64,000 nucleotides of DNA from Marsupella aquatica. Taxonomy: Eukaryota > Plantae > Marchantiophyta. This document shows, in pieces, positions 1,955 to 26,810 of this stretch. The stretch lies in assembly GCA_973895155.1 (NCBI GenBank), contig OZ316898.1, forward strand, positions 10,506,286 to 10,570,285. Direction: 5' to 3'. Each line of letters begins with the position of its first letter. Position 1 is the stretch's first letter. Made by a program: the position numbers and the translations under genes. The notes under the pieces are model-generated. The model worked only from the letters and a program-made list of their open reading frames with translations, was not told where the DNA came from and searched no databases.

Positions 1955-2104
1955 CTATGCATTTTGTAAGGTTACATATTCCACCAAATTCTGGTGTTCT
2001 CGAGGTGATAAAACATAGTATTTCCGTTGCATGTTGAATTCAAGGGTGATTGTCTGGATTACAGTAGATAAAGGAACCCAACACTTATCCCGACCATCAT
2101 ACTT
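1955..2104 (-). pseudogene. C-terminal ~50 codons of the P-like transposase gene, displaced by the CACTA insertion
   Basis: Removing 2105-12114 and one CTT joins ...SKKTSKWK to YDGRDKCWVPLSTVIQTITLEFNMQRKYYVLSPREHQNLVEYVTLQNA* in frame (TAG at 1955-1957). Confidence 0.75.
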
Positions 2105-2140
2105 CACTAGAAGAATCCGAGGTGAACTGAGACCGCAATA

Positions 2141-2460
2141 TGTGACTCATTTTGGCTCATGTGACTTCATTGTGACTCAACGTGACTTGACCCACGCTGT
2201 GACCCTTGGAGTTGCAAAAGTTGAGACCAAAAAATGGAAGTCACTATTGATACTGGGCTTTGCAACTTGCTTGATACCCATTTGTGACTGATCTGTGACT
2301 TTATTGTGGAGTCTAGCCTTGTTTCTACGTGACTGCAATATGACTTCAGCGAGTCACATAGTAAGTCACATACATGACTTACCCGCATTCAACAACGACT
2401 AGCGTGTGACCATTTAGTGTCACAGGAGAGACCAATGGAGACCCTGGCCCGCGTCACACA
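2141..2460. repeat. CACTA subterminal repeats (GTGAC/GTCAC in both orientations)
   Basis: More than ten (T)GTGAC(T) / GTCAC motifs immediately inside the left TIR, as expected for TnpA-binding subterminal repeats. Confidence 0.75.
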
Positions 2461-2958
2461 ACAAAACCATTTGGGACTCTATATACTCATGTTTATAACT
2501 AATAAGGTTCACATGCAAGTTATAACCATGACTAATGAACAGAGAGGGACAGTTCATAAGGAGAGAGAGCACTCCACATTACAATACATAGAAACTGATG
2601 TTCTAACTTTAGAAATATAACACATTGAATACAAGAAATGAACATAGCATGAATGACATCCACATGAAACAAAGCATCATATAAGCAGATCCTACATAAA
2701 ACATTCATAAGAATTAAACACAATCACAATCTTGCTAAAAAATGAAGATCATTTAAATTCCAATGGAATAGTTTACAATGTGATCAATGTAATTCAGACA
2801 AAACAGGAACTCATAATTGATGACTGCAGGATGAGATAACTGAAAGCACATGCATGATACTATGAATCTCCAAGAGGACATGATTCTTGTACTGCTTCTT
2901 GACATCTAAAATCTACATGACATGACTCACACTACAAACAAATAATGGCATGACATTG

Positions 2959-5900
2959 TTATGGATCCTCTATGAACTTGCTTGGCCATAATACCAAAGA
3001 ACCTGCAGCATCTCCAAGTGTCTTTTGAGGAGGATCATCATTTGTGTTTGGAATGGGAAGGACAACTTTAGGTTTCACTAGTAATGTGACTAACACTACT
3101 GAATAACTTGGGGGAATCCTCTTGCCATGGAACGTTGTGGAACCAACCTGCACTCTGCCAAATCCTACTCGTGTTCCACTCTCATCAATAGCTAACAAGC
3201 CACTTTGTCCCTCAGCATTAGGTGCTTTCCCCACTTCCACTTTAGATCTTTCTGCCAGCACTGTTCTTGGAGGTTTGTATGAAACCTTTGACGTGGCTTT
3301 GCTCCCACCAGCAGACTTGCTTCGTGTGCGCATGCTTCCTCTCTTCACAGTAGTGAAGCTAGGCTCAGTAGGTTCCTCTATTAGGACTGTCACAGTAGCA
3401 GGTTCATCACCTGGGAGTGTCATACCAACTAACTCTTTGGTTGGATTTATCTCAACAAGAGGCACACCTATCATTGAGAATGATACATTCTGCAAATCAT
3501 TTATCTCTGCAATGGAGTCAAGATCTACATAGCATGAATCTGGCTCAATGGTATCCTTGTCATGCTTGCTGATATCCTCATTTGCCCCAACATTGATATC
3601 ATCCACTCCCTTGCCAATGTCATCCTTATCCAAACATGGTTGACTGCCCTCTGTCAAACAAGTTGCTTGTACAAACTGCAACTTTGTTGCCTCTAAATTA
3701 CAGCGAGTATTTGCCAGGTTCTCATATTTCTTCTCTGTAGCACCTGTCTTATTCTCTATGGACACAACAACCACAATATATGTTACTAAAAATAACACAT
3801 TCAACAAACAATGTCAATTCAAACTATACATTTAATAATCATATCCCACACAGTTGTAAAGGCCTTACCTTCAAGCCTACATGTCGTTGGCATGCCAGAA
3901 GAGTGCATCGACTTTGCCACCTCAAGTGGTGATGGTGGAACTCCTGCAGAATTGGAATCAATTTTATCTCTCACCGACACAACAGCTTCCATTAATGTCT
4001 TGAAGTTCACATGGAACAAGTCAGTCAATGAATTCAAACGTTCATTGATCTCTGGAAGACATGTTTCGACAGCCTTCAAACGACCACTTATCTCTGTAAG
4101 TAAAGATCCACCTCCCTACATGACACATGGGTATAGGTTCAATCACTCCATATGAAATGTTGGGCAATATATGCACAATCAATGTTATATACAGTGTACA
4201 CCTGAAATTCAACGCAGGTCATTCAATTACCAATCAGAACTCATATAACTTACATGCTTGGAGGATTCAGATACACCCTCTTGAGCTCGGGTGTTCACAA
4301 TTTTGGCCCTCAACTCTTCTTTTGAAGGGCTTTGCCCCAATTGGGGTTTCTGCACATGCATGGCAAACACAAGTTATCGATCAATATTCAGGGAATGTAC
4401 ACTAAAAAACAAAGTTTACATGTATGGGTTTACACTAAAAAACAGTACATAGTGTAGCATAAATTACATAGCTAGGCCATTCATTCTTACCAAACGTTTA
4501 GCTGTCGGTGCAGTGCCGGTCCTTCCTGTCAGATTAGGGTTCTGAACACTCAACCTGGCCTCGGTCATCTGTGAACTCTTCTTTTTTGAAGCATCTGTTA
4601 CAAAATAAGCTACTAACCTTGCCCACACTTTATCATCACAACTGGCTGGTGGAGGCATATCTGGCTTCTCCCCACCTTCCTTCCAAGCCTTATGCATTCT
4701 CCACCTCTCTTGCTTGATGATTTTACCTGCTGTACTCTCTAGGCAACCTATGTCCACGCCATCATCACTGCCCACATAATTCCATTTGCCAGCAACATTT
4801 TCACATACAGTCTTCCAATCTTTTGGATGCTGTTTTTTAAAATTAATAACACTCACATCTAACCAACGCAATACTTCAGCTTTCAAATTAGCATGCCATC
4901 GGTTCTTGCGAGGACACTCAGCATCCACCCATTGTCTCTCATTCAACTTTACGTTCCCTTTCTTTGTCACCTCCCCTCGTGCACTGCTCTCGGTAGTACT
5001 GGGCGTTGTATTGGCCACCCCTTCATTCACCCTACCTGGGGTTCTGAAGCCACCTGGGAAAATACAATGCCATTCATGCTTGAGAACTACATACAGCAGA
5101 ATGGATGACGGCAACATTCAATGCTTCACTTCAAGAAGAATTCTTCAAACATACATACCTGTAGCTCTGCCTGTAGATGCCTGTGCAGGGACTGCACTCT
5201 GAAATTGTTGCGACCCTGGACCACCTGTCCAGCCTAGTACAGGGGCCGAATGATGTCACTTTCTAGGTATGTGTGTGCAAACATATGTACTGAAAACTAA
5301 GTACAAACTGTAGGAAAACAACTGAACATTCACCGACATACCTGTCCCCCTTCCGTGCTGCATCTGCATAGGGGCATTAGTGAATACTTGAGTCGATGGT
5401 TCGACTGTCCAACCTACACACATACATTTTCTATCATTATACATGTGCAGAATCCCCCCCCACGTGAATGGACTCCAGATATAATGGGTTCTTCCATTGC
5501 TGACAAGATCAGACATTACCTGCCCCTCTTCCAACGTTTGTAGGTACTGTATTTTGATATCCTTGCCAATTACCTTCACCACCTTCCCAACCTTGTTCAT
5601 TCCACGACCCACCACCATCCTCCCAACCTGGTTCAACCCATGTTTGTCCTTGTGGACATTGGAACTGATCATTACTAGCATTTGCCCAATCAGGTTGGGC
5701 AGAATCTGCATGCAATGGTAGGTGGACAAAATTTCATGTTGTCTGAATCCAATACATCCCAAACAATGTCAAAAATTGATATGCAGTCTGAAATTCAGGA
5801 GTGTCATGCCTTCACAAAGAACTGGCATATAGATATATACTCACATCCCCATGGTTGAGGTGGACGTCCAAACCCACGAGACTGTGGGTTTGGACCTGCT

Positions 5901-6461
5901 CTGCCTCTACCATGGGCATAACCTAGAGCTTGCCCCCTGCCATAGTATTGGGCACCAGCCTGGGATCTACCACTACTACCACCTTGCCAACCTTGATCAA
6001 AGGTCAGCCCCCCCTGCTGGTATGGTGCATGCACAGGCTTTGAAGGCAAAACAGAACTGGCAGGACGCTGCATCACATCACCAACTACAATGTCAGGAAC
6101 TAAGCAAGGTACATATGTGTAGTACTGAACATATGAAACCTCCAAATAAGAGTTTTTAACTCAAAACCTTGTTGGGAAAACTACTTACCTGTTTCTTTTG
6201 GGGCTGCTCTGCAATGTATTCATCTTCATAACCCCCATCCTCATCCATTTCCTCTGGAAAATACTCATCATCTGCATCTTCTTGTCTAGTGTCTGCACCC
6301 ACCTGTGCAGCATCCATGTCATCTCCACATTCTGCCATTGTAGGTACCACCTTCTTGCTCAACCTTTCACTCCGACGCACACGCCCAGAGATAGTGTTGG
6401 ACACCCTTCTTGCATACTCCTTTCGTTTCTTTGAAAATTCTGTGGTTCTGCAACATTCCAA
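2959..6461 (-). CDS. CACTA TnpA-like multi-exon gene (Ptta/En/Spm-type domain plus Tnp1/En/Spm-like C-terminal domain); possibly disrupted, 5' end uncertain
   Basis: 4464-5053 reads PPPASCDDKVWARLVAYF...KKSSQMTEARLSVQNPNLTGRTG, typical of plant En/Spm Ptta-like proteins. 2959-3200 reads VGFGRV...HGKRIPPSYSVVLV...LPIP...TLGDAAGSLVLWP, typical of the Tnp1-like domain. Small GT-AG exons lie at ~6090-5845, 5705-5520 and 5413-5342. Confidence 0.7.
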
Positions 6462-7039
6462 TATGAAAATACAATCACAATTTCAGTGCCACATTGAACT
6501 ATTCATGTCACACAAACTCACTGCAGGATCATATTAGGATCCCCAGGAATCCCGCCATCTTGCATTGCATCATTCATTTGATCATCAAGCGACTGCGGTG
6601 ATTCTTGTAGCAAGTGGCGAACCTCCTCTCTTTTTCTGCATCAACAATGTTTTAGTCAGGCACCAAAACGCATTGACTCTGATTCAAGACTGTACACGTA
6701 TCTACTGTGATTGCAAAGACACCCTTTGGCCAAATGCTGATGGTCAAGAGAAAACCATCTGCACTAAGAGCTGAATAGTCAAGCATATGGAAGCCCCCAA
6801 ATTCCGAAACGACAAGACCCATGGGGGTGAAGAATTTACAAAGCCGGCATGGAAGTAAAAGATTTCAGACAGACAAGATATCTGAAGGAGAACTCTTTGG
6901 GAGAAACAATTACATCCATCGTAAAATACACCAAGATTGAAGAAAGACAAGCTGAATAGGCAGATTACAGGAATGTAAAAATTCACATCAAAAAAGGAAT
7001 AATATGCGGCTGGCTATAACAACCAAAATAAGATCTCCT

Positions 7040-7272
7040 GACCTCCAGAAGTCAAGGGATTAGCATTTTGGGCCACATTTTCCTTTAGAAATATCTACAG
7101 CTTGGTTATACACTACATTAGTGTGCGTACAGCTTTGTAGACAGGTGACCTCCAGAAGTCAAGGGATTAGCATTTGGGCCACAGTTTCCTTTAGAAATAT
7201 CTACAGCTTGGTTATACACTACATTAGTGTGCGTACAGCTTGGTTATACACTACATTAGTGTGCATACAGCT
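7040..7272. repeat. Tandem duplication (~108-bp spacing x2, plus an extra ~32-bp subunit)
   Basis: GACCTCCAGAAGTCAAGGGATTAGCATTT...GGTTATACACTACATTAGTGTGCGTACAGCT occurs twice and its last part a third time. Confidence 0.85.
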
Positions 7273-8887
7273 AGACCGGTTTGTCAATCCTATGAATGCT
7301 TTGAAGCTTCATGCCTTCCACTACTTCTAGGAGACTCTTGCAACTTCCACCATCCTGTTGAGCATCGTGTTCGGCAAGGACCGCATTTGTTGTCTGAAAT
7401 TTTTGCAGAATTGCACAACTAGACCAACCTGTGATGGCAAAAGGGCTGTGTGCGCGAAGAGTGTCTAAGCAGGGCACGTTCTTTTCTTCGTCAACCACAG
7501 CACCAGGTGGTCCACCATCATTGTACAACATTCTGGCGGCCCTTGGATCATACAGTTCTGGGTATAGTTATGGTCGCATGCAAAGATCCTGGACCCCTGG
7601 CGTTGAAAGAGAGAGTGAGAGAGATCCGATTGCGCCCTTACGGCATTCTTTCATTTCGTTCCTTCGGTGCCTAATCGATTATCCCACTGCCGCCCACCCA
7701 TCAACGTGACACCAATAATTTTCTCACATCATTGCTGCACTGATTCACAACACTATGCTATAACTACAGAGGGGGAGACGACAGACGGAAGCAATCAAGA
7801 GCACCTGGGGGACCGTGGTGTCTCTCTCACCATAGTAACCGAGCTTCCAATCCTGCAGCGTGTTTGGACAAATATACTAAACAGAGGTAGTCATGTTTTC
7901 ATTAATTTGGATGAAAAGGCTCTAGAGCAGCAACCAAATAAGATTAACGGAGCGTCTTCATTGTAAAGATTCTTTCCGTCCTCCAACATAGCACTCATCT
8001 ATACGTTAAAGAAGAAAGAACAACGAGAATTTCAGTGAGGTGAAATAGGAGGACAAGGATCCATAGGCAAGTTTGCAAAAGGCCTTTGCCACCGTCACAC
8101 CATCCTTCTTAACTTCACGATAACCAAAACTTTGCTCTGTAACCACATTTTGACCTTGGAAAAGAGTTACAGATTCACAAAGCAATGAGTGACTGGTACA
8201 AGGATGTCACGCACCTACGACACACCTAGACATAATTTTATGAGGGACGGACAATAATTACGTTAAGCAGATGTCTTCTACACCTTTGGGCCCATGGTAA
8301 CCTTCTCAGCATTCGGTAATTCATCAACACCTTGGAGTGTAAGAGCCCTCGAATTGCCTCGACTCCAAACCTGGTATCCTTTGATCCATAAATTTGCACC
8401 AGTTTCGACCTGCTGCATTCTCAACTCTGAATCAGACCAACACAAGAGCATCTGTCTGGTAACTGCGTTAAGGACAAACACTCGGGTCAACTGCTACGAT
8501 CTAAAAACATAGTACAGATGGACGGAGAGTTACAATTCACCTCCAACGTTGTAATTCGAGAGTACGAGGTTGTGAACACTACTTCTTCACATGCTTCCTA
8601 GTTAGTACAGTACGACTATTTCTGCTAGCGACTCTACAATCTGCCGGATGGATAAAATCTACCGGCAGTGGATGGAATCTTTGGAATTGGGAACTGAATA
8701 GTCGAATCTATCCAGGACCAATTCAATAGTGAACTATTCGGACAGGAGGGTCCGTAGTGCACATAGATACTGGAGTAACCTCACTTCTCATCGCACTGTT
8801 GAACGAATCGAGAAGCATAAAATTGCCAACTTCAAGAGAAAAAACACACGACCTACTTCATGGTTGACTGAAAGAAAAGCCACCCAC

Positions 8888-9000
8888 CTGCCTGGCCGCA
8901 ATTTGAGTGTAGCGGAGAAATTTGTGAATGTTCCTGTACTCTCTGGAGACAAGGATTCACCTCGCATCCAATTATCAAACGACCCCATCACTGTGACGTC
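8888..9000 (-). pseudogene. Captured single exon of a PTST1-like CBM48 (starch-targeting) gene inside the CACTA element
   Basis: AG-GT-bounded 113-nt exon encoding DVTVMGSFDNWMRGESLSPESTGTFTNFSATLKLRPGR, matching the CBM48 motif V.VMGSFDGW..GE.LSPE.TG....FS..L.LRPGR of plant PTST1. Flanking exons were not found. Confidence 0.7.
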
Positions 9001-11433
9001 CTGGCAAACAAAAGCATTAGTATAGAGAGAAGGAAAAGAACGACAACAAAAACCAAGATCAGATCTAATTTCAACAGGGAACCTGTCAAATACTACTCAA
9101 TACAATAAGGGCCAACTCGCATGTGTGCGTCCTCAAAAATGCGGCCCTTGGCCTACGCAAAAAACAACCCTTGATCATCAGAAGCAAGCAAGGCATGCGA
9201 TGGATCAAGAAGTCAATGCAGCTGCCCCCGGTGAATTTCTGTGATTCCCTCCGCCCTCGTGCACTTCATTGTGGTTGCACCCCATAGTTAAATTATTGTT
9301 GAGAAAACTGTTGCATGCCAATCTGAAGAACACGAAAACAATTTTGCCTTTGCAGCTCTTTACGAGTAGTCATTCTGAGCTGGGACAGGGCAGAAAGGAC
9401 ACGCAAACACATTGTCGTCATTCGTTAATGCCAGGATCTCATATTCGAGGTAAGGTAAATACAGAGTGTTCATGCATGAACCTGCATCTTGGCAGCTCAG
9501 TCTTGACATTGTACTTGACAATCGGACGTCTTAGAGAATTGAGATATCTCTTAGGACAATTGAAACTCAGGCACTCTCTTCAGTACTATCGAATCCAAGA
9601 TGCGAAAATGGATACTGAGACGACAGCTCAAAGCAACTTTGAAGCAACATCAAAAACCTTGGGATAAGGCTACCACCGGAGGACCCCAGGTTCTGGATAG
9701 TCACTTCCAGAAAGCAAGTGGGTTCCAAGATCATGGAACGCCGTTGTGTGGAAGCCTACACACATGTGTTCGCTATCACCCAAGGCAAAGCCAAAGGATC
9801 TTGCTTGAAACTCTTTCTCAAGATGTTCAAAATCATTGTTCTCTGCCACGGGTGACTCTTCAGAGCCCTGAAATTATTCGATAGTCACGCCTACTACGAT
9901 TACCGCCTCATCAATGAGCTAGAAGCAAATCTTTTGCAAGATGAAGCAGGTCGAGGAAGGATCAGCAACTTAGTTGGAGAATCGAAAACTCCAGCTATAA
10001 AACACATATTCCCGGGTGATCGCTACACCAGCGAACGTTCACAAACACGTCCTAAAGTATCACAATATTGTCACCAATCCTCACTTCCTTATAGAATACA
10101 ACGATTTCTCCGTGGATTATTTGGTGCATAGTGACACGAGGGGAAGAAATGATGAAGAAGAAAAATATGTTTTCAAAGGCCTAACTCTGTAAATCCAAGC
10201 TCCCAGTTCGCAAATCCATCTTATTCCACTACGTACCGTGACCAAAATCTCATACCCTAAAAAGATGCCCTGCAGCTCCCATACACTACTTTGTCCCAAA
10301 ATACAGATCCCGGCTCTTACACAAACCTCAAGAAAAGATAAACCCAGGACCTGATCACCTCTTCCGCTTACTACGACCGTGTCCCAGCAGGGATTCCAAA
10401 GACGAAGACAAAAGAAAATGCACTACGAGATGGGGTGAATAATCGACTGACAGCCAAGAATAGAAGAGCAAACAAAGAAAACCCACCTTGCAACACTCAC
10501 AAAATGCTGTCGCAGGCTCTACATTGTCGCAGCCCGCTGACTGCCCGTATCATGAATTGCGCATGAAGCACTACTGTAAAACTGCAAAACCAGCAACTTA
10601 ACTCGGACGACGGGCTGAATGACAGTTACTTTCCAAAGCTCTCGTTGTCTTTGCACGCCCTCACACCACTCAACTGTTGAAGGGCCACGCAGCAAAAACC
10701 TACTTTTCCATAGCGATTGAAGCTCATAGTCTAATGCTTTAATCTACGTCCTAAGTGAAAGTTTGCAAATCGAGCAAGGCGACCCTGTTTGAATATTGGC
10801 GACCATCAGGCTCCACCCCTCCTTTCTCGCTACCATTCCCCCATGTGATGGTTAAGCTTCTCAGGACACAATCAATCGCACAAATGTAGCTTAAAGCAGG
10901 ACCTCACTAAGCACACTATCGGTTAGGACCTTACAGACATAGAGGTGACATAGAGATAGATAGGTCAACGCAACCTTACTTGGGCCGATGCAGCATGTCT
11001 CTTGACAATGTGAAGCAGTGTAGCATTCCTCCGCCTAGCTCGCAGTGATCCTCCGCCTTGCTTGTAGTAACCAGCCTCCGCCTACCTAGCTTGCACTGTC
11101 ACGGCTGCAACTTTTTGTGCAATGACTTGGCCCTCCTGCCAACTGTGAGCTCCCAAAAGTATGTCGAGCAGATGTACACTCAAGCTCGACCTCGCAGAGC
11201 TCAACTCCAAGTCGGCAGCTCTCACTTGAAACTCAATAGCAGCTTAGCTCACCAGCAGGTTGAAAAGCGACAATGGACTCCCCTCAAAACTGATTGGCAG
11301 ACCTCCACACTGACGCTCGTAGCAGGCCAATCCTAAACACATTTGCACCCTAAAGTCCAATCGCGCTCAAACACTTTCATTGCCCCCTACAGGAAGTTCG
11401 CAAAGAGTGCAGCTGGAATGAAGGTCGTCGACT

Positions 11434-11542
11434 CCCAATTTCCCTCGCAAAACCAACCTCCGCGGCACACTGACCCTGAACACTTAGGGCACGGGCCCCA
11501 ATTTCTCTCGCAAAACCAACCTCCAAGGTACACTGACCCTGA
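11434..11542. repeat. Direct repeat of ~46 bp at 63-bp spacing
   Basis: CCCAATTTCxCTCGCAAAACCAACCTCCxxGGxACACTGACCCTGA occurs twice. Confidence 0.8.
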
Positions 11543-12114
11543 GGGAAAGTAGTACCCCTCACATGTGGGCAGCCATCGAGTGACTTAGCAAACAGGTTGG
11601 TTTGGACATAAAAGAACAAATGCAAATGACTTAGCAAAAAGTTCAATGTGGGGAGAGTGCATTTTGGTCAAGAACAAGGCCAAATATAGTCAGGTATGAC
11701 CCCACATTATAAGTGAAAGTACCCACCATTTTGATGAAAACCCCCATATTTATACCCATTTAGATTTGGACTTATTGAACCATGAGTGTGCAATATGTAG
11801 TTGCACCGGGAGTTGCACATTAGGGATTGGCATCCGAAATTGGCTAATGGGGTATGCATGCTGACGGAATTTTAAAAAATGATGTCCAATGCACTATTGT
11901 GGAGTAACTAACATAACTTACCTATTTCTTACTTACCAGTGTTACAATAGCGACATTGGATAAAGTTGTAAGCATGACTTCCCACAGCCTCACCAAAACT
12001 TAGTTGGTATGATGTAACTAACATGACACCCACAAACTTGGAGTCGCATATTTATGAAGGTCTTGCACAAGTCACATAGGGGAGGGTCTCAGAATGGGTG
12101 GTTTTCTTCTAGTG

Positions 12115-15100
12115 CTTCCACTTGCTGGTCTTCTTGGATTCTAAAATTGAAGTATACCATAATGCTAACAACCAAGTCTCACCAGTTCCTGGATTCTCCA
12201 TATCCAGGATATCATTTTGCTTTTAAAACTTGCTTCGCACCTTTCTCTTGATCATTTGAACCCTGCCAATTTCAAAATAAGCTTCACCTTGGGATTTTTT
12301 GTCACGACATCACTTGGACCTCCACCATGTCGACTTTGTACTGAAGCTATGACACTATTAGTTCCATGTCCATCTTCCCTTTCAAATAGTACAGCGATAT
12401 CATGTCCAGGGACAATGGTCTTCACATTTGGATCTGTACGCAATCTATTCAATTCCTCCTCACTATAATATTGGTTTCCCGCTGCCTTTACTCTTTGAAG
12501 TCGGTCTTTTGACAAGAAGACATTGTCATTGAGTTGAGATACGAGCCTAGCCTTCCATATGTACTCACCAGGCCTTCCTGGCAAGGGAACTTGGGGGTTG
12601 ATTCTATTTCCTAAAACTGTAGAAAATGAAGGTGGGACCATAGTATCTTGCATCTCATGCATGATATGTCGAACCTCCAAAATATTTTGACGCTCTTCAA
12701 CTACAACATTAGTTGCTATTGAGTTTAGTAAATCACTCAGAACTCTCCAGATCCAACTCAATATCATCTTCCTCTATCATGGAGGCCTTAGAAATATCTC
12801 CATTGCTATGCACCACCATATCATCATTATCCCCGATTTCAAGAATTGAAACTGCTAACTCACTCAAGTTCTTTTGGAGAACTTCTTCAAAATCCCATGG
12901 TTGCTTAAACCAACGAGCCTTTGAAGCATGGCAATGAGTCGATGGAGCCATGTCCAGCACCCGTAATAGTTTTTGTGCCTCATTCAAACCCTCCTTAAGT
13001 GCATCTATCACGTGGACCTTATCATCTGGAATCTCAGAAAAATCAGCAAGATTTGGAGCAGGTATTGTTTGCACTCCATGTTTATCCATTGGCACCGGAT
13101 GAAGGTCCTCCCACACAGTTCTCATCTTTGCATGCGTTCTTGGAAAGACAACACCACCCTTCATGGATTCAATTTCAGCTAGTCGATTCAAAGAACCGGC
13201 TGCTCGCATTAGATCCCCAAAATCATATGCTCGCTCCACACCAGACATCCCGCCAACTTTTGAAAAGAAGATCTCACATACATCGCTACCTGTTCGTGAG
13301 AAAGGTATTGGCATTGACAAGTACTTGTCCCTGAAGAGCTTCACCAACAACACCGCAAAGTGACATGACATAACAACATCAATAAAACATTGGTTGCTAA
13401 TGAAGTCAACTGATAGAGTTGGAGTACTGGTCCCATGCTCTCCATGTTCAATATGAAGTTTCCATAGCTTCAGAAACCACATCACCTTAGATGCCTTCAC
13501 TATCCTGTCTCGAATGGAGTCAATAGGAGAGGCAAAAATATCTACGTAATCAGCTACAATCTCTAGATACAACTCTGTACCTTGGGTCCTTTCTGGATGG
13601 CTCTCATTCTTCATTTGAGCAAGGCCGCTGAAACCTTTTTGCTACACAACTTTTGGGCACTTTCAAAGTTTTGGCGATCTCTTCTCTCAACGTCTCCTTG
13701 ATTCAAACCAGTAGAATCAATCTTTTTGTTGTTGAATAGTTTTTGAATGTGCTCCATCCGCACCAAATAAGAACCCAACCACAATACACGACAAGTGCTG
13801 TCTAATGGTGAAATCAATTTTTTCACGTTGTGAATCCAATCTTGGTCATGTAATCCATTGACCATACCTGTTGAATCTTCCATGATGGCTCCAAGCTTAA
13901 AACCTTCCCAATCAATGCGAAATTCTCTTGAAGGATTTGGGTCCCTTCTGTAGTAATCCGCCAATTGTTCAGATCGCCATCTACTATCTCCATCTGAAGC
14001 ATGTCCAATTATAGGACCAACTAAATCTAAACAATTTTCACTCCACAATTTCTCTACTCTACTCCACTGTGCACGAATATCTTGTGCTATAAGTGTATTA
14101 CAACTTCCCATTGCAACTAATAGGAATGGCGGAAGTGACATATGCATGGGATTGGCCATCAAAACACGGGCGTAGTTTGCTTTCACTCCATTTTTAAATG
14201 AATCATTTATTTTGTTATATCCAGTCTCACCAGAACCGACCAGTACTTTAAAATCATGAATACATTTATGACATTATGATGTGCCACAAAATCCCATTAA
14301 AGTGTCATTGGTGCTGACCCACCTACATAAAGTACCACAATGTTTCAATCAATGATTTATAATCTTGCAATACAATTGGAAAATGGAGGAAAGTGTCATG
14401 CCGATGTAAATATTAAGCTGTAATGTCATGATTGCTTACCTTATCATTTTCCGAATTGATGTCTCATCTTCTGCAATAATAACGGGAACTGGTCCATGGA
14501 TCCCCAACTTCAGTTTTAGTTGTGCATACGTCTCAGCAAGATGTTTAAATTGATTACTACTCTCGCCAACTACATACTGGAACCCCCTCTTACTATCACG
14601 TTTGGTTGTGGAAATACTTGGGCCAGCAAGGTTATGAGTCAGGAAATTGGAAATGGCTGGCCCAGCCCTTAACTTCACCACCTCCCACATAATTTTGGTA
14701 TTTTCTGAAAAACGTATGCCTTGCTTTTTTCGAGGTAGATTTTGTGCAACATCAGACATAAAGTCCCACAAAGCCTCCTTCCCTCCCCATAAGCCATCCC
14801 TCCATGAATTGATAATGCGTCGACAAAACAATGTCACATCCGCCCGATTTGCTGATTCTGTTTGTATCCCTACAAAACTCTTTTTCTCTGCCTTGCACCT
14901 CATCAATTTTACTTTCAGCATCCAATTCTCTTTTCTAAGATTTCTATAAACTCTATTTTTTTCTTTCACTACAATTGATAACTCCACTGTTGTCAAGAAC
15001 TCCAACCGCCTACCTAGCCCTGTGTCTCGGCCACCATGTTTCTCATGAGCCACATGGTTTCTCAAAACTTGGCCGCGCCAATCTTTTTCCTGAGGTATGG

Positions 15101-16605
15101 TTTGACACACATCACAACAGAAGTCTGAGAAGCTGAATCCACTTGTGTTCACACGCTTGCAATTGACATGTCTAAAACAACCATCAACCATCTTTGTGCT
15201 TGATTCAAAATGAAGCACTGCTTGAGTATGTGGTTATGAATACCATGTAACCCCTTTCTTCTGGTCTAGCAAAATGGGTTTAGAGTCACATCCTTCATTC
15301 TTTATAATGACACTATGGCGCCAAATATCCCAACACAACATTGATGCATCGATAGTACCTGTGCTTGAGCTCCCACCACTTGGTCTACTGGAATCCGTCA
15401 TAAAAAAGGCTTTGGTTCTTGGTTGCTTTTGGCCTATTGCTTTTGATTGCCAACCAGGGCGCCCTAGAGCTTTGGAGTTGAGTGAAGTCTTGGCAATTTC
15501 GGCATCATGAATTTCTTTCTTTCTTTTGACATGACGAATCCCCTTCATATGCTGGTCCAATGTGGAAGCAAGATTATTTGTCTTTGGACAAAGCAAGCAT
15601 GTTGAATGACAAATGTTGCACCTCCACTTATAGTCTCGCCCAGACACCTTCTCATTCTCCAAATCACCATCAATGACAAAAACCTCAACCCCTTCCTCAA
15701 GATTTGCATCTTGTATCAACTTCATATTATCCAACAAAAATTTTCTTGAATGGGCAATTGCCAAAGCCACAACATCAGCTCTCTCTTCTACCTCTTGGGC
15801 ACTCTTCTTTTGTCTGCATTTGCGATCATACTCGGCCCGATGTAACTTGGTTGCAATATGTTGCTTCCAAAAATTTGATGTAGTGTTAGAGTACTGATCA
15901 ACCTTCCCTATGTCAATCCATTTTTCACATTCTTGGCACCATATCTTTGCAATTGCATGGTCTTCCTCATCCCATGTTTCAACCCACCAGAGATGGTCAC
16001 CCTTTCCATCTATCTCAAGCTTGTCAACAATCCCACGAGTTGCCCTCTCCCAATTGGCTTTTTGATCATCCATCATGATCTTACTTCTCATCCTTGGAGG
16101 ACCTCCCAACTCTGGAGGAATAGTGCGATCGAGAGTAGTTGGGACCTTAACTATCACTGGATTTGTTATAGGAGTAGAGGCATTGTCATCTCCAAAAGTA
16201 TCTTCAATCCCGTAATCTTGTAAATCATCATCCATCTGCATTGGTACCTCTAAGAACAAGTCTTCCATTGAAGGTCCACTAGAATTTGGTTGAGATTCTA
16301 GTCGAGCTCTCTTTGGGGAGTTCTCTGTATGTTGAAGTGCAAAAATGATGATCTCTGAACCAGATAGTATGTTTGCTTTCTCCCACTTTCGATTGAAAGG
16401 TCTCTTCAATTTCTCATTCCAAAAATCAAACTCAAAATCTAAAAGGTTCATGCCTTCAAGATATGATTGGATGCTACTCAATTGCCCAACTGTAGGACCA
16501 TCCTTCAAAGATATAGGAGAGATGAACTCTTTCTCTTCTCCACGACAATCAACTTGAAAGAGTTGCCAATCAACAAACTCCATCCTTAATTGTTTGTAAG
16601 TGTCC
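12115..16605 (-). pseudogene. Zinc-finger region and P-element-superfamily-like transposase core
   Basis: Motifs in P-transposase order: RFSENTK...GPAISNFL...GPSISTTKR (HTH-like), IIAEDETSI (D at 14466-68), DTLMGFCG, ANYARVLM, ASDGDSR (D at 13992-94), DQDWIHNVKKL (DxxH), DRQNFESAQKLCSKKVSAAL, TQGTELYL...YVDIF, RTGSDVCEIFFSKVGG (E at 13273-75). Upstream C2H2-type fingers: CQEC...HIATKLH and CNIC...HMKGIRH. Confidence 0.75.
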
Positions 16606-16822
16606 CTGCAACTGTAGTCAAATACAACTTAGAGTCATACTCAATAGTCTTTGTACACCCTTATCATCATTCTAGCTATAATAGATGTCCACAAGGTCTA
16701 AGTAGTACAATTTTCATTTAATATTCACTTGATACATTTCAAATCCCCAAATTTAGTATTCATCCAATCATCCATAAATAATAGCTCATAAGAAAATGAT
16801 TCATGCACAAATATGAAAAAGT

Positions 16823-17013
16823 TGTTGTAATATATGGATAATCCTTAAAGGAGACCTTAAAGGATATGATTAGAGAATCCAAAGGGTATGCTTAGGAATA
16901 ACTACCCTAACCATATTGTATAGAAAAGACTCCTCCATTTTGAGTCATCTTCTACTTATTTGATTGATCAAAGAAGGATGATCATAATTTCATAGTATTT
17001 TTGAGTTATAACA
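16823..17013 (+). repeat. 5' LTR of the copia element
   Basis: TGTTGTAATA...GTTATAACA; 189/191 identical to the 3' LTR. Confidence 0.95.
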
Positions 17014-17025
17014 CGTTATCAGCAC
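17014..17025 (+). promoter_or_regulatory. Primer-binding site (Bianca-type CGTTATCAGCAC)
   Basis: Lies immediately 3' of the 5' LTR; motif recalled as typical of Bianca/Sto-4-like copia elements. Confidence 0.65.
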
Positions 17026-17166
17026 CTTCGCCTCCATTCCTGAGCAAATGCAAACTCCCTTCTCGATAGTGGGAGTATATTTTTTTTCATGGGGATTTTG
17101 ATTTCAACACAATCCCTAATATCAGAGAGACACGGAGACAGCAGTTGACATTTTTTTGCCAAATTC

Positions 17167-20100
17167 TTGACTAAAACACGCAAGGATCAACGACAACGCC
17201 GCAATACAGCCACAAAGCTCGAAGAAAGATACAGAGCATCCAGTACTTCCAAGTATTCCATAAAATTTACTGCCATGGAAAAATTACAATTCCCTATCCT
17301 CAAAATCGACGGGTCTAACTACCTCTCTTGGTCACAGAATGCCGAAATTGTGCTAAATGCTAAGGGAATTGGAGACACAATTCTCGCTGATCACCATGGC
17401 AATCTACAGACAAAAGCTCAAGCAATATTTATCCTCCGGCACCATTTGGACTCCGATCTACAAACTCAGTACCTGGACGAATATAACCCTCGAGCTCTAT
17501 GGGATGCATTAAACAGACGCTATGACCATTTAAGATTGATCTCTCTCCCATCCGCACGCAATGATTGGATACATTTACGTGTACTTGACCATCCAACTAT
17601 TGCTAGTTATAATAGTGCGTTATTCCGCATCACCTCTCAATTGAAGGTATGCAGACACCCAATATCTGAATCCGATCAAATAGAGAAAACGTTGTCTACT
17701 TTCCCTGCAGCAAGCATGATACTATCTCAGCAATACAGACAAATGCACTTCACCGAGTATGCTGATCTAATCGCAGTCATGCTACTGGCGGAAAAGAATG
17801 ATTTATTACTCATCAGCAACACAAAGTTGAGACCACCAGGCACAATCCCTAGAGCAGAGTCTCAATACATGGCTACGCCTTTGCAGGCGCAACACAAATA
17901 CAAGGGCAAGAGCCGGTTTACTGAAAACCAGGGTAATCGACTACAAAGATTCAGAAACACCCAATTTACAAAACGACGCCAAAATAATTATACGAGGCCT
18001 TCATACCAACCTCGTAAGAATTCGTGGACTCAAGCCTCCCGGACTTCCACTACTAAATGTTTTCGATGTGGAGGCACAGGCCACATTGAAAGAGACTGTC
18101 GGGTACAAAACCATCTGGTCAAATTATACCAAGCAAGCCTAGCAACAACAAATACCACGATGGTCAATAACTACTTGGAAATTGATGAAGATCTTTCCAA
18201 ATATACGAATATCACACCATTAACAGAGGCCAACCTGGTCATAGATACACACTCTGAACCTTCTCTCACAGACTATAATATGTGCATACTGGATAGCGGC
18301 ACATCTCATACCATATTGAAGGACAAATGATATTTCCAACAGATATTTCCCTCCACCCGCCCAATCACCACTATCACAGGCATCAATGCATTAGAAGAAG
18401 GCCACGGCCCTGCAAAGTTACTCCTCCCTAACAACACTATAATCGAAATAAAATCCGCTATTTATGCCCCAGGGGCCACAAGAAACCTATTAAGTTTTCA
18501 TGATATCAGGAAAAATGGCTACCATATTCGATCTGCACCAGGCAATGAAGATAACTCCTTACAGATCTTCACAGAAGATGGAAATAATTCCCGCATCCAC
18601 GAGATTCTACCTTATCACCCACCTGGACTATATGTTGCACCAATACAGAGTTTCCAAACAAATATTCTAAACACAACAATCACAGAGTTGTGGCATTGTC
18701 GCCTGGGCCACCCAGGCACCTCAATGTATCAACGCATCCTACAGGATACCAGAGGTATTCCTCCAACAGTCCGCCCAAATTCCATGAAATCGCCCTGCCT
18801 CGCATGTGCACAAGGCAAACTACAAATCAGACCGTCAGTACCCAAGACTGTGAATCAAATCCCGGCTTTTCTGGAACAACTAAATGTGGACGTATATGGA
18901 CCTATCGAACCACCAAGTGGTCCCTTCCACTTTTTCCTAGTCATGATTTGTTCCTCAACCAAATGGTCCCAAGTATCCTTGATATCTACCCGCAATCTGG
19001 TGATTGCCCGCCTTCTTACACAAATATTTAGACTACGGACACAATTCCCTAATTCGCCTATCAAAAGGATTCGAATTGATAATACAGGCGAATTCACATC
19101 ACCCATTTTTAATGACCTATGCACTACACTTGGAATAACAGTACAATATTCAGTGGCTTATGTTCACTTCCAAAACAGAACGGCAGAGTCCTTCATCAAA
19201 AATATCCAGATGATATCATGCCCATTATTAATGAATACCCAGCTCCCGCTAACTACCTGGGGACATGCTGTCCTACACAGTGCTGCTCTATTAAAATACA
19301 GGCCATCCGTCTTCAACAAATATACACCACATCATTTGGCTTACGGTAACATTCCTGACGTATCACACCTCAAAATCTTTGGCTGCTTAGTCATGGTACC
19401 CATATTGGGACCCAAGAGGACCAAGATGGGACCTCAAAGACACACAAAGGTATATACATTGGTTTTGACTCTCCTTCTATAATTAGATATCTAGAACCAA
19501 CAACTGCAGACACCTTTAGAGCTCGCTACAATGATTGTCAATTCCGAGAAGATATATTTCCTACCCTTAGCACAGTGAACCTCCCAGTTACGCCTAAGCC
19601 AACTCAACTACAATGGCAAACACAAAATCCCTTCTGGAATGATCCAAGAACACCATTAGCAAACGATGAGGTCAAAAGGATACTACACCTTCACCAAATT
19701 ATGGAAAAATTGCCAGATGCGTTCAATGACGCGGCACAGATGACGAAATCACATATTGAAGCAGCCAACGTCCCTGCACGTATAACCATTGATGAACAAT
19801 TAGCTAATCATGTACCACCCAAAACAAAGAGAGGACGTCCTCCTGGTTCTAAGAACAAACCAGCAAGCAATAAACGTCCTCCTACCACACTACTTACCAT
19901 GACATCAAACGTACCACAGTAGAATGAATATGAAGAAATCTCCCTCAACTATACAGTCACTGGAAATATATGGAATCGACAGGATACAAAAACGAATGAC
20001 TGTTTTGCACTGATGATATCATAGACCATCTCTTCAGAGTTAGCCGATCCTTGCATAGTTCGTGAAGCTCAACAACGCGAGGACTGGCCCTTATGGAATA

Positions 20101-21869
20101 AAGCAATAAATTCAGAGCTCGATTCCTTGATTTCTCGCCAAGTATTTGGTCAAATTAGTCACCCAACATCTGCTCAACATCTAACAGGATATAGAATTAT
20201 CCTGGTCACAAAAAGGAATGCTCAAGGAGAAATCATCCGACATAAGGCACGTTTAGTTGCCAAGGGATATACACAGATATGGGGACAGGACTATGATCTA
20301 ACATATTCTCCAGTCATGGACACCATTACCTATCGTTACTTAATTGCTTTCTCTTTGGTTCACAGACTAACTTTACATCTCTTGGATGTCGTGACAGCAT
20401 ATCTTTATGGCACCTTAGACACAGATATATACATGCAGACTCCACCTGAACTCATTCAGAGAGTTCATTTCCATATTCAGGGGGAGAGAACTTTGCCATT
20501 ATCTCCCGATCTAAAAGCGGGCATTACACAGATAGTGCCCACAGCTCTGCAATTAACATTGATGAATCAAGCATTAGAACTTGAATCAGATCGAACTGGC
20601 CATATAAGCACAACAACCCAAGCTGTTTCTATGAAACAAATAGAGCTACATGCTATATCAGTGCACAGACAGATCAGCAGAAAGAAACCTCAAAGTAAAC
20701 TTGTTGTACAAGTCCTCCGCTCAATATACGGCCTTAAACAGAGCGGACGGATATGGTACCAACGCTTTAAAGCGGAAATGCTAGCACTTGGGTTTGTTAA
20801 CAATGAAATAGCTCCTTGCTTATTTATTAAGCATATCGAACAAGAATTTGTCATCCTGGCGATTTACGTTGATGACATCAGTATATTCGAAACTCCAAAG
20901 ATTACTTCGAATACGATCTCATCTCTCAAGAATATATTTCAGATGAAAGATATCGGTGAACCTTCTTACTGTCTGGGTATACAGATAGAAATTTTACCTG
21001 GTGGGATCTTCATTCATCAATCTACATACGCTCGCAAAGTGTTAAAACAATTTAACATGGATAAATCTTACCCAGTGACCACACTGATGGACCTTCGCTC
21101 TATTGATCCTACAAAAGACATCTTTCATAAGAAAACGGATTCAGAAGTAACGCTCGGACCAGAGAAACCATACCTCTCTGCAATTGGGGCCCTCATGTAT
21201 CTTGCTAATGAGACGCGACCAGATATAGCTTTCGCAGTCAGTATGCTCGCTCGACACAGCTCTCAGCCAACCATTCGCCATTGGAATGGCATAAAGCAAA
21301 TTTTCAGGTATTTACAAGGCACAATCAATATGGGACTATACTACTCTAACACAAGCGCTAATGAACTTGTTGGTTATGCTGATGCAGGCTACTTATCCGA
21401 CCCTGATGATTCCAAATCTCAAACCGGATACGTGTTTCTGCAAGGAGGGACGGCAATCTCCTGGAAGAGCACTAAGCAGACACTTACCACAACTTCTTCA
21501 AATCACGCTGAAGTCATTGCCCTATACGAAGCTTGTCGCAAATGCATCTGGCTTCGCCAATTACTTGACCACATTCATACATCAGCCGGATCCCCCCCAC
21601 TAACAGCACCAACAACAATTTACGAAGACAACCGACCCTGCGTGAATCAAATCAGCATGGGATTCATCAAGGGTGACCGCATTAAACACATCGCCCCGAA
21701 ATTCTTTTACACCGCCGAACAACATGGCGATCAAGTAAACGTCGTCTGGATCCCTTCGAACGAAAACCATGCCGACATATTCACAAAGCCGCTACCCCGA
21801 CACTTACATAACGCACATTGTGAAGGAATAGGTCTACGTCGACTTTCCACACTCAAAGATCCGCCCTAA
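17167..21869 (+). pseudogene. Copia gag-pol polyprotein, disrupted
   Basis: Gag GSNYLSW...IFILRHHL, zinc knuckle CFRCGGTGHIERDC, protease ILDSGTSHT, integrase WHCRLGHPG/RIRIDNTGEF, RT YGLKQSGRIW/YVDD, RNase H GYADAGY/ADIFTKPL. In-frame TGA at 18328, frameshift at ~19445, TAG at 19920 and ~20022. Confidence 0.93.
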
Positions 21870-22148
21870 ACATGAAGAAACCAACCAGTATTCCATTCGA
21901 GACATACACTTAGACATCCTATCGTATTAGGATTTCCATACATTAGGTCACAAATACACTTACAATTAACCTGATAACTTTTGATCTATACATGTAAGTG
22001 GTAACACTCTTTTCCCGAGAAGAAAGCAGCGGGTTTTTAATGAGGTTACACCTGATGATCAAATGCTACAAAGAGGTTAATATAGGATTCCCCTAATATT
22101 ACTCATTAAGATTGCAAACAATTATCAATTTTAGCAATCTAGGGGGAG

Positions 22149-22339
22149 TGTTGTAATATATGGATAATCCTTAAAGGAGACCTTAAAGGATATGATTAGA
22201 GAATCCAAAGGGTATGCTTAGGAATAACTACCCTAACCATATTGTATAGAAGAGACTCCTCCATTTTGAGTCATCTTCTACTTATTCGATTGATCAAAGA
22301 AGGATGATCATAATTTCATAGTATTTTTGAGTTATAACA
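22149..22339 (+). repeat. 3' LTR of the copia element
   Basis: Follows the PPT AGGGGGAG and is followed by the TSD AAAGT. Confidence 0.95.
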
Positions 22340-22347
22340 AAAGTTAC

Positions 22348-23446
22348 TTATATGTGTACTTTGTGTTTCAAGTCAAGGAGGTTCCTCTAAATTGAGTGTT
22401 GTCACTTCAATGCATCCTCAAAACTACAATTTAGTCCTCTATGTTGTCTGGACGGGGCCACAGATCCACATGATTACGGCGAGGGGTCTTGTACTTCTCT
22501 ACAATGGCATGAGTAGGACAATAGGCATATTTCCATGTGTGACCCCTATCCTGGACTGTGAAATGACCAACCTCTGGTAGACAAGTGAGATGCCATGCTT
22601 TGGGGCACCTTCTACACTGAACAAGATGTGTAAAGTCCTCTCCTGGGAGATTACAAGAAAACAAGCATGTCGATTACATTCAAAACTAGAAGGATTCCTC
22701 CGGATCCTGTCAACAAATCCAATCCGAGCCGCATGGTCCAATTTCTTCTCAAAAAAACGTAAGTGGAAGAATGCATAACAGTCTTCCCTAGCACATTGGA
22801 AGATGTTTTTCCTATGTCCATCATTCCGCTCACTGTATCCCATCTCCCCACATATCATGCACTGATGCTTGGAAAGCAAACAGTTGTTGCAATCGAATCC
22901 ATTCATATTCTTTATGACAGCATACCCACATGTCAAGGTCACACATTGGGAAACTTGGCCATCTGCCAAACAATGATGAATATGTCACTTGCATTTTCCC
23001 TCACAATACACCAAATCTCCTCCATCATCACATATGACACAAATAGGAGGCTCCAATACACAAACCTCAGCTGATGTAAATGCATCAATGATAGGGGCAT
23101 ACTTGCCAGTGCCTCTCAAAATCAGTTCTTCAGGATCATGTGTTGCCAAAGGTGTCACTGACTTAGAGAATGTTGTATGAGGGGTTTTAGGTATTTTAGG
23201 AGGTGGTACTCCTTCCAAAGGAGGTGATGGTGGGGAAGGTGGTTCCGTCGTCAAAGAATCTGGCACCATAGTGGGTTCTGTGAACAAAGGTTCTATTCTT
23301 ACAGGCTCACCTTCCTGAATAGTGCGACAATTTTTTTTAGGATGTGCTGAAAATGGTACATCTATGTCCACCCATATTGATGGGGATGATGGTCCTGCAT
23401 TATCCATGTCTACAACTGTTGAACCCAAAAAAATCCAAATTTATTC
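22348..23446 (-). pseudogene. Exon encoding a Pro-rich linker and an EDM2/NSD-type atypical PHD-finger array
   Basis: CVICDDGGDLVYCEGKC...CNNCLLSKHQCMICG...FQCAREDCYAFFH...FECNRHAC...CRRCPKAWHLTCLP...YCPTHAIVEKYKTPRRNHV follows the EDM2 PHD module order. Stop at 22985, frameshift at ~22660, stops at 22431/22407/22368. Confidence 0.85.
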
Positions 23447-23515
23447 CTGCAATCACATACAAACATGCATGTGCATTCCATTTCAAATCATAAATAACAA
23501 ATAAAATCCAATACA

Positions 23516-23670
23516 TACAATCCAAATCAATTTCAAACAAAATTCAAATATATCCAATACAATCCAGATCAATTCCAGACAAAATTCTAATAAATTCAAT
23601 ACAATCCAAATCAATTCCAAACAAAATTCTAATATATCCAATATAATCCAAATCAATTCCAAACAATTTC
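23516..23670. repeat. 42-bp minisatellite, ~3.7 copies
   Basis: Unit approximately AATACAATCCAAATCAATTCCAAACAAAATTCTAATATATCC. Confidence 0.85.
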
Positions 23671-23827: not shown

Positions 23828-24304
23828 TCATATCTTCAAATATTTCTTTGGCACAAATTCTCTTGCTGCAAGTCTACGAGCTACCAGTGTCTTCCATGCA
23901 TCCTCGTCCATTTCAGCCTTCTTTTTTTCCCAATCTCTTTGAATCTGTACACAACTAGGGTGCAGCAAGAAGCCAAACACGTCTACTATATCAGAATGCT
24001 TCAAGCATTTTGATATCCAATCATATGAAACAATGAGGATTTTCTTAGCTACTTTCTCAAGTACATTCAACTTGCCAAAGAATTGACAATGACAATTTTT
24101 CCAGCTTGCTGGAACCACATGTGTGGTTTCTGTTCTAATCTTGGAGGATTTTGTCCCACCATAGTGTAGAAGCCTTTTTGAAAGAATATTGAGTCTTGTT
24201 TTAGAGATCTTTTCTCCATCAATAAAACAACAATGGATATCCTCAAACATATGTCGAGGACCAATGTCGTGACGTTCATTGAATTTTTTTTTCAAATCCT
24301 CCAT
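23828..24304 (-). CDS. BRCT-domain ORF (DNA polymerase X/lambda-like BRCT); probably part of the same transposon
   Basis: Uninterrupted 158-aa ORF with F..I.F.......RLNIL.KRL..YGG.......THVV......IVSYDWISKCLK (BRCT GG, THVV and W..C motifs). Same strand as, and ~400 bp upstream of, the PHD exon. Confidence 0.7.
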   Translation of the reverse strand: MEDLKKKFNERHDIGPRHMFEDIHCCFIDGEKISKTRLNILSKRLLHYGGTKSSKIRTETTHVVPASWKNCHCQFFGKLNVLEKVAKKILIVSYDWISKCLKHSDIVDVFGFLLHPSCVQIQRDWEKKKAEMDEDAWKTLVARRLAAREFVPKKYLKI

Positions 24305-25889: not shown

Positions 25890-26810
25890 TGCATGACATA
25901 CGTGAGATTTTACTGACAAGCCATCATAAAAAACAAGTGAAATAACTAAATAAGAGCTTTGTGTACGTACCTAGGTCTTAAAAGTAAAGTTGTACAGTAG
26001 TACTAAGATGGTTGTGCAAGCTTCAGCCTCTTCACCTTTTTGTCTTCTCTGTCCCGCAATGTGCACAATCTCTTCGTCTTTTCTTCGAGCGCCTTGCTCG
26101 CTCCTTCCAGCGCCTTGCTCACTCTTTCCAGCGCCTTGCTCAGATGTGCAGAGTCTCTCCCTTTCTTTTCTCTTGTCCAACGTCTTACTTTCAAAGCTAT
26201 TGGCAAAGGTGTGCATGCCATGCGTGAGATTCTTCTGACAAACCAGTGAAATAAGAGCTTTACAGTACGTACTTGGGTTTTAAAAGCAAAGTTGCACTAT
26301 TTTACTAAGCTGATAAAAAATATGCATACCATGCGAGAGATTCCCTTCACAAGCCTCCAAAAACCATCACTGAAAAAAGACCTATGTGTTACGTACCTGC
26401 GTCTCTTCACATTCTTTTCTCCTCGATTCTATTCTTCTCAGTTCCACGATGTGCACAATCACATTCTTTTCCTTGGTCCCACAATGTGCACAATCACTAT
26501 TTCTTTACCTCGGTCCCACGATGTGCAAAGTCTTTCCACTCTTTCAACAACTTGTTCACTCTAAAAGGCTAAGCTCATTCCCTCATATATTCCCACTTTA
26601 CTCCATAGCTCTTTCACCCGACATATTTTTTTTCTGCAGGAAACATTTTGGCGCCTAAACCGCCTCCACTCTTTGACCATATCACTTTAGGGTGCTATTG
26701 AACATTACCCTAATATGAATATTTTAACTTTGGTGCATGAAACGCCTCCACTCTTTGCCCATATCATTTTAGGGTGCTATCAAAACATTATCCTAAAATG
26801 AATATTTAAT
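25890..26810. repeat. Cluster of diverged local duplications (21-bp x3; ~100-bp and ~68-bp duplicates)
   Basis: GCGCCTTGCTC(G/A)CTC(C/T)TTCCA x3 near 26089-26141; CGTGAGATT...AAATAAGAGCTTT...AAAGTTG twice; CGCCTCCACTCTTTG...GGGTGCTAT...TGAATATTT twice (~26661, ~26743). Confidence 0.7.

Follow-up and report, generated by a model that had tools for sequence, protein, structure and literature searches.

A decayed P-type transposase gene with a predicted C-terminal BAH/Tudor-like domain, next to PHD and BRCT reading frames, in the liverwort Marsupella aquatica

P-type transposons are textbook animal elements that are also known patchily outside animals, and a THAP (C2CH) domain is typical of the P and THAP9 transposases, being common to Kolobok too. 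To our knowledge, P-type elements stand outside the standard catalogues of land-plant transposons. When 1,007 plant genomes were screened using the transposase models of Pfam, that for P among them, the active elements recovered all belonged to seven other superfamilies (PMC12973397), and P-type miniature inverted-repeat transposable elements have been reported only in 'lower plants', on the grounds of terminal inverted repeats (TIRs) and target site duplications (TSDs) (PMC3964958). Here we analyze a 64,000-nt stretch of the genome of the liverwort Marsupella aquatica (GenBank assembly GCA_973895155.1, contig OZ316898.1, positions 10,506,286 to 10,570,285; hereafter, the window), which contains a decayed transposase gene and, upstream of it on the same strand, open reading frames (ORFs) with PHD and BRCT domains. 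The initial annotation joined the PHD array, two zinc fingers and a P-like transposase into a single gene. In our analysis, the transposase is probably a dead P-type copy, and the PHD and BRCT ORFs are most likely separate from it rather than exons of the transposase.

The transposase gene occupies the minus strand of the window, from an ATG at 16583 to a stop at 1955-1957. From its upstream leader to its stop, it consists of the following parts:
16584-16822, minus strand: upstream leader of the transposase ORF, in which the proposed splice acceptor AG/G (16606/16605) precedes the ATG by 22 nt; above the ATG, the sequence does not resemble that of the relatives.
15237-16583, minus strand: subfamily-specific N-terminal extension beginning with ATG 16583, with two C2H2-type fingers (15941-15840 and 15626-15531); collinear in the loci L001 (Calypogeia fissa), L006 (Riccia sorocarpa) and L008 (a plant contig in JGI metagenomes) and in the fern protein P0032.
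14439-15233, minus strand: N-terminal Cys/His cluster (CFRHVNC...CCDVC), helical, helix-turn-helix (HTH)-like region and first catalytic Asp, in AEDET (14474-14460); identified by motifs and by a model of the relative P0038, which aligns to P transposase from residue 184.
14274-14438, minus strand: gap that is probably a short intron, following ...AEDETSIRKMIR and matching in position a gap of Calypogeia L001.
13614-14273, minus strand: central part of the catalytic core, including SDGD (second Asp), DWIH..K and DRQN..A..L.S, and the beginning of the insertion domain; identified by motifs in the translated pieces.
12736-13641, minus strand: second half of the catalytic core, in which SDVCEIFF (13287-13264) supplies the third catalytic residue, a Glu that is invariant in the family (E650 of P0038).
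12115-12773, minus strand: linker and first part of a putative C-terminal BAH/Tudor-like domain (YIWKARL, DIAVLFE, GRVQMI); identified from the translated pieces and the fold of the Calypogeia ortholog.
2105-12114, strand not set: CACTA-type DNA transposon of about 10 kb, with termini CACTAGAAGAA and TSD CTT.
1955-2104, minus strand: last 49 codons and stop TAG (1955-1957) of the putative BAH-like domain, beyond the CACTA element; translation KYDGRDKCWV...LQNA, with tblastn matches to Calypogeia L001 and Riccia L004-L006.

The minus-strand, stop-free pieces of this gene are the zinc-finger arm (16628-15237, with ATG 16583 and the two C2H2-type fingers), the pieces designated N (15233-14439, with AEDET), M (14273-13614, with SDGD, DWIH and DRQN) and C (13641-12736, with SDVCEIFF), delineated by translation, and two tail pieces (12773-12115 and 2104-1958) that make up the C-terminal domain. 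Single stop-free pieces were used as queries in the searches; the sole joined sequence was the genomic DNA with the transposable elements excised, which was compared with L001 by blastn. All the motifs that had been taken as a P-superfamily signature are present in the window in the proposed order, namely, AEDET, SDGD (13997-13986), DWIH (13841-13830), DRQN (13679-13668) and SDVCEIFF. Between the ATG and the stop, the gene has accumulated two in-frame stops (15234-15236, which parts the N-terminal extension from the next piece, and 12223-12225), three frameshifts, including one near 12290 and one that sets the piece 12736-13641 out of frame with its flanking pieces, and the CACTA insertion in the C-terminal domain, so that this copy is indeed dead, as originally supposed. 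An exact look-up of the 449-aa ORF returned no record. The possibility that this is a domesticated host gene was rejected in view of the many decayed copies in Riccia and the decay of the present copy itself.

A Pfam scan of the transposase core pieces produced no match above threshold, and neither sequence nor profile searches of the core against PDB sequences resulted in a match. The fold was compared using an AlphaFold2 model of P0038, an intact 823-residue relative, built on 94 family sequences (mean pLDDT 86.5, pTM 0.78). A Foldseek search with this model put the Drosophila P transposase on top (6PE2, E = 9e-11; 6P5A, E = 2.3e-10; target TM 0.65-0.69), followed by RAG1 (E = 1e-4). Alignment of P0038 with the P transposase by VIA-align yielded a Z score of 24.3 over 410 of 456 residues, with residues 184-685 of the model matched to residues 133-566 of the chain, that is, nearly the whole solved P chain, including the insertion domain, to which a GTP cofactor binds in the P superfamily; the runners-up were HzTransib (Z 12.0), RAG1 (about 10) and Hermes (7.7). 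Furthermore, the ten best named look-alikes in the ESM Atlas, with scores of 0.91-0.96, all belong to clusters of PF21787/PF21788/PF21789 (TNP-like RNase H, GBD) that are annotated as P transposase or THAP9. None of the families PF21787, PF21788, PF21789 and PF12017 reached the gathering score, either in the pieces from the window or in 50 long family members, and the only Pfam families that recurred below threshold in these 50 proteins were Tnp_P_element (PF12017; 2 of the 50, E = 6.4e-5) and TNP-like_RNaseH_N (PF21787; E = 0.002). In the alignment of the 50 relatives, the Glu of SDVCE is invariant and the D(2)H..KK motif is nearly so.

The THAP domain was detected by Pfam neither in the window pieces nor in the 50 long relatives, and the Cys/His spacing does not resemble the C-x2-4-C-x35-53-C-x2-H pattern of THAP. 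Because the fold match, the Atlas look-alikes and the sub-threshold Pfam families agree, we accept the proposal of a P-like, THAP-less transposase: judged by the modelled fold of P0038, the core belongs to the P superfamily (TNP/THAP9-like), in a lineage that Pfam does not recognize. That the core instead represents one of the other D-D-E superfamilies whose insertion domain is large (Transib/RAG, hAT or Kolobok) appears very unlikely. Transib and RAG1 do match the model as well (Z 9-12 over approximately 370 residues), the Pfam P families remain below threshold, and neither fold search returned a solved Kolobok structure, so that the ranking of P was made without Kolobok; however, the score of the P transposase is double that of these competitors over most of its length, the Atlas look-alikes are uniformly TNP/THAP9, and the recurrent Pfam signals come from P families only. 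The resemblance to Drosophila P and human THAP9 encompasses the HTH, the RNase H core and the insertion-domain fold, the order D, D, D(2)H..K, E of the catalytic motifs, and D-to-D and D-to-E spacings of similar size. In contrast to these transposases, with which identity is only about 14 % and which Pfam does recognize, the present lineage has in place of THAP a Cys/His cluster and, in the subfamily of the window, two C2H2-type fingers, carries an additional conserved C-terminal domain of predicted BAH/Tudor-like fold, and resides in liverworts and a fern.

The family is large. A search with the 302-residue C piece matched 23 proteins, including ones from Riccia sorocarpa and Calypogeia fissa, and a family profile retrieved 2,001 representative proteins at E<=1e-3 and 1,060 at E<=1e-10, one of the representatives coming from the fern Adiantum nelumboides. 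By sequence comparison, then, the lineage is found in liverworts and at least one fern. The order of the zinc-finger, N, M, C and tail pieces is retained in Calypogeia L001, in Riccia L002-L006 and in L008, and L001, L006 and L008 are collinear with the window gene throughout. The DNA shared by the Riccia loci L004 and L006 is confined to the gene plus about 850 nt upstream of the ATG and about 470 nt downstream of the stop, a unit of about 6 kb that contains one gene. In both the window (14274-14438) and Calypogeia (L001:8805-8890), a stop directly after KMIR is followed by a short gap at the same position; given this coincidence, the gap is probably an intron, and the two species together suggest that the liverwort copies have a conserved intron of phase 0 within the catalytic core. 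In Riccia L005, an 819-nt segment with the BAH-like domain is duplicated (5638-6456 and 11381-12199; 99.4% identity, about 5.7 kb apart); a recent segmental duplication would account for this, as would a second copy in truncated form. Literature searches yielded no description of this lineage, nor of a P-type element with PHD.

The scattered minus-strand ORFs of the locus had been explained by two later insertions with exact TSDs, and both insertions could be located in full. The CACTA-type element is bordered by the 3-bp TSD CTT at 2102-2104 and 12115-12117, along with its terminal sequences, and splits the C-terminal domain of the transposase; its only transposase-domain signal is a sub-threshold match of the ORF 4464-5117 to Transposase_24 (E = 1.6e-4). 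Excision of this element together with one TSD copy joins TSKWK/YDGRDKCWV in frame, reproducing the Calypogeia sequence ...NSKWKYDCVDRCFV..., so that the 3' end of the gene, down to the stop at 1955-1957, is restored as had been proposed. The second insertion, a Ty1/copia retrotransposon, sits in the upstream leader of the transposase ORF. It has long terminal repeats (LTRs) of 191 nt each (16823-17013 and 22149-22339) that are 99% identical, a 5-bp TSD AAAGT (16818-16822 and 22340-22344), and ORFs that match gag, integrase and RVT_2, in the order gag, integrase, reverse transcriptase. Five DNA-type public sequencing runs hold the locus. Their contigs over 16450-22449 comprise one per run on the flank and one that enters the LTR (contig X4, covering 16450-16850); among the contig joints listed from these runs, there is none from 16822 to 22345.

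Upstream of the transposase gene, on the far side of the copia element, the following features were identified:
16823-22339, plus strand: Ty1/copia LTR retrotransposon, identified by paired LTRs, TSD AAAGT and ORF domains.
22345-22430, minus strand: apparently non-coding stretch after the PHD stop, with two more in-frame stops and the proposed splice donor AA/GT at 22348/22347; identified by translation.
22431-23407, minus strand: decayed NSD/EDM2-type triple PHD ORF, with a possible ATG at 23407, CVICDDGG at 23041-23018 and its own stop TAA at 22431-22433; identified by Pfam.
23515-23666, unstranded: 42-nt tandem repeat, 3.6 copies with 90% matches, between the BRCT and PHD ORFs; identified by repeat search.
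23828-24304, minus strand: undisrupted ORF of 158 codons that immediately precedes the PHD ORF and encodes one BRCT domain (Pfam BRCT score 21.6 bits; cut-off 21.3).

The PHD ORF is recovered in three stop-free pieces (23440-22988, 22984-22502 and 22673-22434, minus strand, by translation) and is disrupted by a stop at 22985-22987 and a frameshift near 22660. Its Pfam matches follow the three-finger order of NSD proteins: PHD-1st_NSD (PF23011; 14 bits, below threshold and cut by the stop), PHD_NSD (PF22908; 31.5 bits) and PHDvar_NSD (PF23004, C5HCH; 35.4 bits), the latter two exceeding the Pfam cut-offs. The PDB sequence matches of the PHD pieces are to generic PHDs at E >=0.05, and the type label comes from the NSD families of Pfam. 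No homologs of the PHD pieces were found by word search, Atlas search or two metagenome scans, and none of the BRCT ORF by word search or exact look-up. The BRCT ORF is fully intact, with ATG and stop, amid decayed surroundings. An F-box or Cys-rich ORF was not seen near the PHD and BRCT ORFs.

If the PHD array were the first coding exon, spliced from 22348 to 16605, the gene would encode a single chromatin-reading protein of about 1,900 residues. The two splice sites on which this scheme depends, AA/GT and AG/G, are indeed present and compatible in phase, the PHD array and the transposase share a strand, only about 325 nt would separate the PHD stop from ATG 16583 in the absence of the copia element, and other branches of the family do have fused accessory domains (SAP, C1, Tudor), which are located at other positions. 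However, the PHD ORF terminates soon after its last finger, and its frame runs on as ...RPDNIED(stop)IVVLRMH(stop)SDNTQFRGTSLT(stop)NTKYTY, so that the 28 codons leading up to the proposed donor contain three stops, the PHD ORF's own stop included, compared to two lesions in approximately 325 PHD codons and five in approximately 1,550 transposase codons. With stops this dense against the low density elsewhere, the stretch encoding TKYTYK looks non-coding. The relatives lead to the same view: L001 and L006, the two that were checked, start at an ATG equivalent to 16583, have an in-frame stop 7-13 codons upstream and show no similarity to 'DTYKQLR' above this ATG. PHD or BRCT sequences were detected upstream of the relatives neither by tblastn (E up to 0.1) nor by a scan for Cys clusters, over about 10 kb in L002 and L003 and 3-8 kb in L001, L006 and L008, and Pfam finds PHD in none of the 50 long family proteins (0/50). 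Copies that encode PHD and the D-D-E core in one ORF are likewise absent from the Riccia, Calypogeia and JGI loci and from these 50 relatives. The only positive evidence for the fusion is the phase match of GT and AG, which is no better than chance (approximately 1 in 3). Taken together, these findings make the fusion very unlikely, and the single PHD-zinc-finger-transposase gene of the initial annotation is abandoned here. We read the PHD and BRCT frames as separate ORFs that lie upstream of the transposase on its strand and most likely constitute an accessory cassette standing on its own.

How this cassette came to lie next to the transposase can be explained in two ways. The PHD and BRCT ORFs could be accessory genes carried within the P-like element itself, between its 5' end and the transposase, an explanation that is quite conceivable although it falls short of an even chance. 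It accords with the order and orientation of BRCT, PHD and transposase, separated by short spacers, with the lack of any other transposase in 24300-64000, and with the similar levels of decay in the cassette and the transposase. It is opposed by the relatives from Riccia, Calypogeia and JGI metagenomes, all without the cassette, by the one-gene unit of Riccia, and by the lack of a TIR that would bracket the cassette and the transposase together. A paralog is not in evidence either: each public run with this locus contributes only a single contig to the transposase-side flank (16450-16822), and no paralog of this flank at >=80% was seen in these contigs. According to the other explanation, the cassette is what is left of another element, for instance, the 5' part of a CACTA transposon, next to which the P-like transposon landed by chance. 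This, too, is a serious candidate, to which we give somewhat less than an even chance. The region is a nest of insertions (copia and CACTA), and the relatives of the transposase never carry the cassette; on the other hand, there is no CACTA terminus or CACTA transposase beside the cassette, the CACTAC at 24350 shares just 6 nt with any partner, and the common strand and close spacing would have to be coincidental. A conceptual parallel for a separate PHD gene next to the transposase is the combination of a D-D-E recombinase with a PHD reader encoded by a neighboring gene in RAG1/RAG2 and ProtoRAG/Transib. In contrast to the liverwort locus, those recombinases belong to a different superfamily (Z of 10-12 only), and RAG2 is a kelch-PHD protein, whereas the window encodes an NSD-type triple PHD.

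The chromatin-reader part of the original proposal, abandoned for PHD, survives in an altered form at the opposite end of the protein. The tail domain is conserved in many relatives, and we modelled the Calypogeia segment (L001:10667-11284; pLDDT 80). Among its top 20 structural matches, 15 are BAH domains and the rest chromo-barrel or PWWP, with Tudor just below, at Z scores of 5.4-7.0 over 69-96 residues, all under the value of 8 below which the tool warns that a match may reflect a common arrangement. The BAH matches include DNMT1 BAH1, ORC1b, EBS, AIPP3, ZMET2, ASH1L, TNRC18 and PBRM1; the best Foldseek E-value for the tail model is 0.03. These comparisons suggest that the tail forms a BAH/Tudor-like beta-barrel that is truly fused to the transposase. 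If the BAH-like fold is correct, the chromatin-reading part of the protein would be its C-terminus, as a genuine fusion. Elsewhere in the family, proteins from ENA assemblies have other domains toward this end: P0080, from a branch that differs from that of the window copy, has a PTM/DIR17-like Tudor domain recognized by Pfam at the C-terminus, and in P0100 and P0099, respectively, a SAP and a C1 domain lie where the catalytic-core match ends or shortly beyond it, the SAP domain overlapping the last 20 or so residues of the match. This variety suggests that domains have been repeatedly swapped at the C-terminal end of the family. The chromoviruses, with a chromodomain joined to a Ty3/gypsy integrase, similarly have a mobile-element enzyme with a C-terminally fused reader fold of the Royal-family or BAH-like kind, a plausible chromatin tether. 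The difference is that the enzyme described here is a P-type transposase rather than a retrotransposon integrase and that the reader role of its barrel is predicted from fold matches with Z <=7.

Apart from the low Z scores of the tail, several points weigh against the interpretation of the locus as a dead P-type copy with a separate PHD/BRCT cassette. The D-D-E triad occurs in the window in the right order, having been matched by motif order and conservation rather than by superposition of residues. TIRs or an 8-bp TSD are not definable for the window copy or at the boundaries of Riccia L004 and L006, and comparison of the 3' flank of the gene with the upstream regions yielded only chance-level inverted matches of 10-15 nt; accordingly, mobility as a P-type element is deduced from the protein. 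There may be a splice donor upstream of the PHD stop. Finally, given that the PHD and BRCT ORFs lack homologs, their status as separate genes is based on the stops within the window and on the relatives that do not have them. The two CACTAC motifs at 1932 and 24350 were considered as termini of an element and rejected, with only 6 nt in common.

The rest of the window contains several further features. On the minus strand at 60013-63891, an ORF of 1,017 codons that encodes a ubiquitin domain precedes an ORF with a HECT domain (E = 1.5e-43); this region looks like a host gene, the two ORFs probably being exons of one HECT ubiquitin ligase. On the plus strand are a hexapeptide-repeat ORF similar to dynactin subunit 5 (39236-40030) and a 540-codon ORF without a Pfam match (47886-49508). 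A 21-nt repeat is located at 26083-26142, the segment 28001-30000, upstream of the PHD/BRCT cassette, is very AT-rich (GC 0.20-0.23), and the first 1000 nt of the window are GC-rich (0.56).

As reconstructed, the intact transposase would consist of an N-terminal arm with two C2H2-type fingers, a Cys/His cluster, an HTH-like region, a D-D-E core of the RNase H type carrying a P-type insertion domain, and a BAH/Tudor-like barrel. If the enzyme works as the Drosophila P transposase does, its zinc-finger/HTH arm would attach to the ends of the element, and DNA cleavage and rejoining would fall to the D-D-E core; tethering to nucleosomes could be the role of the C-terminal barrel. Considering the patchy occurrence of P-type elements outside animals, the plant lineage is an extension of the known range rather than a new kind of element. 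Nevertheless, a family that Pfam misses and that has more than 2,000 relatives in the databases is probably overlooked by plant annotation pipelines. The conserved C-terminal domain, if indeed BAH/Tudor-like, would make this family a concrete example of cut-and-paste transposases that contain a chromatin-reader fold of their own. A broader scenario, in which a land-plant lineage of P-type elements exchanged THAP for zinc fingers of other kinds, acquired a BAH/Tudor-like nucleosome reader as a permanent C-terminal fusion and, in this genome, also gained PHD (and BRCT) accessory genes common to unrelated CACTA elements, is put forward here as a tentative and rather unlikely one. If it is true, different superfamilies of liverwort transposons would have converged on chromatin readers of their own, for targeting or for escape from silencing.

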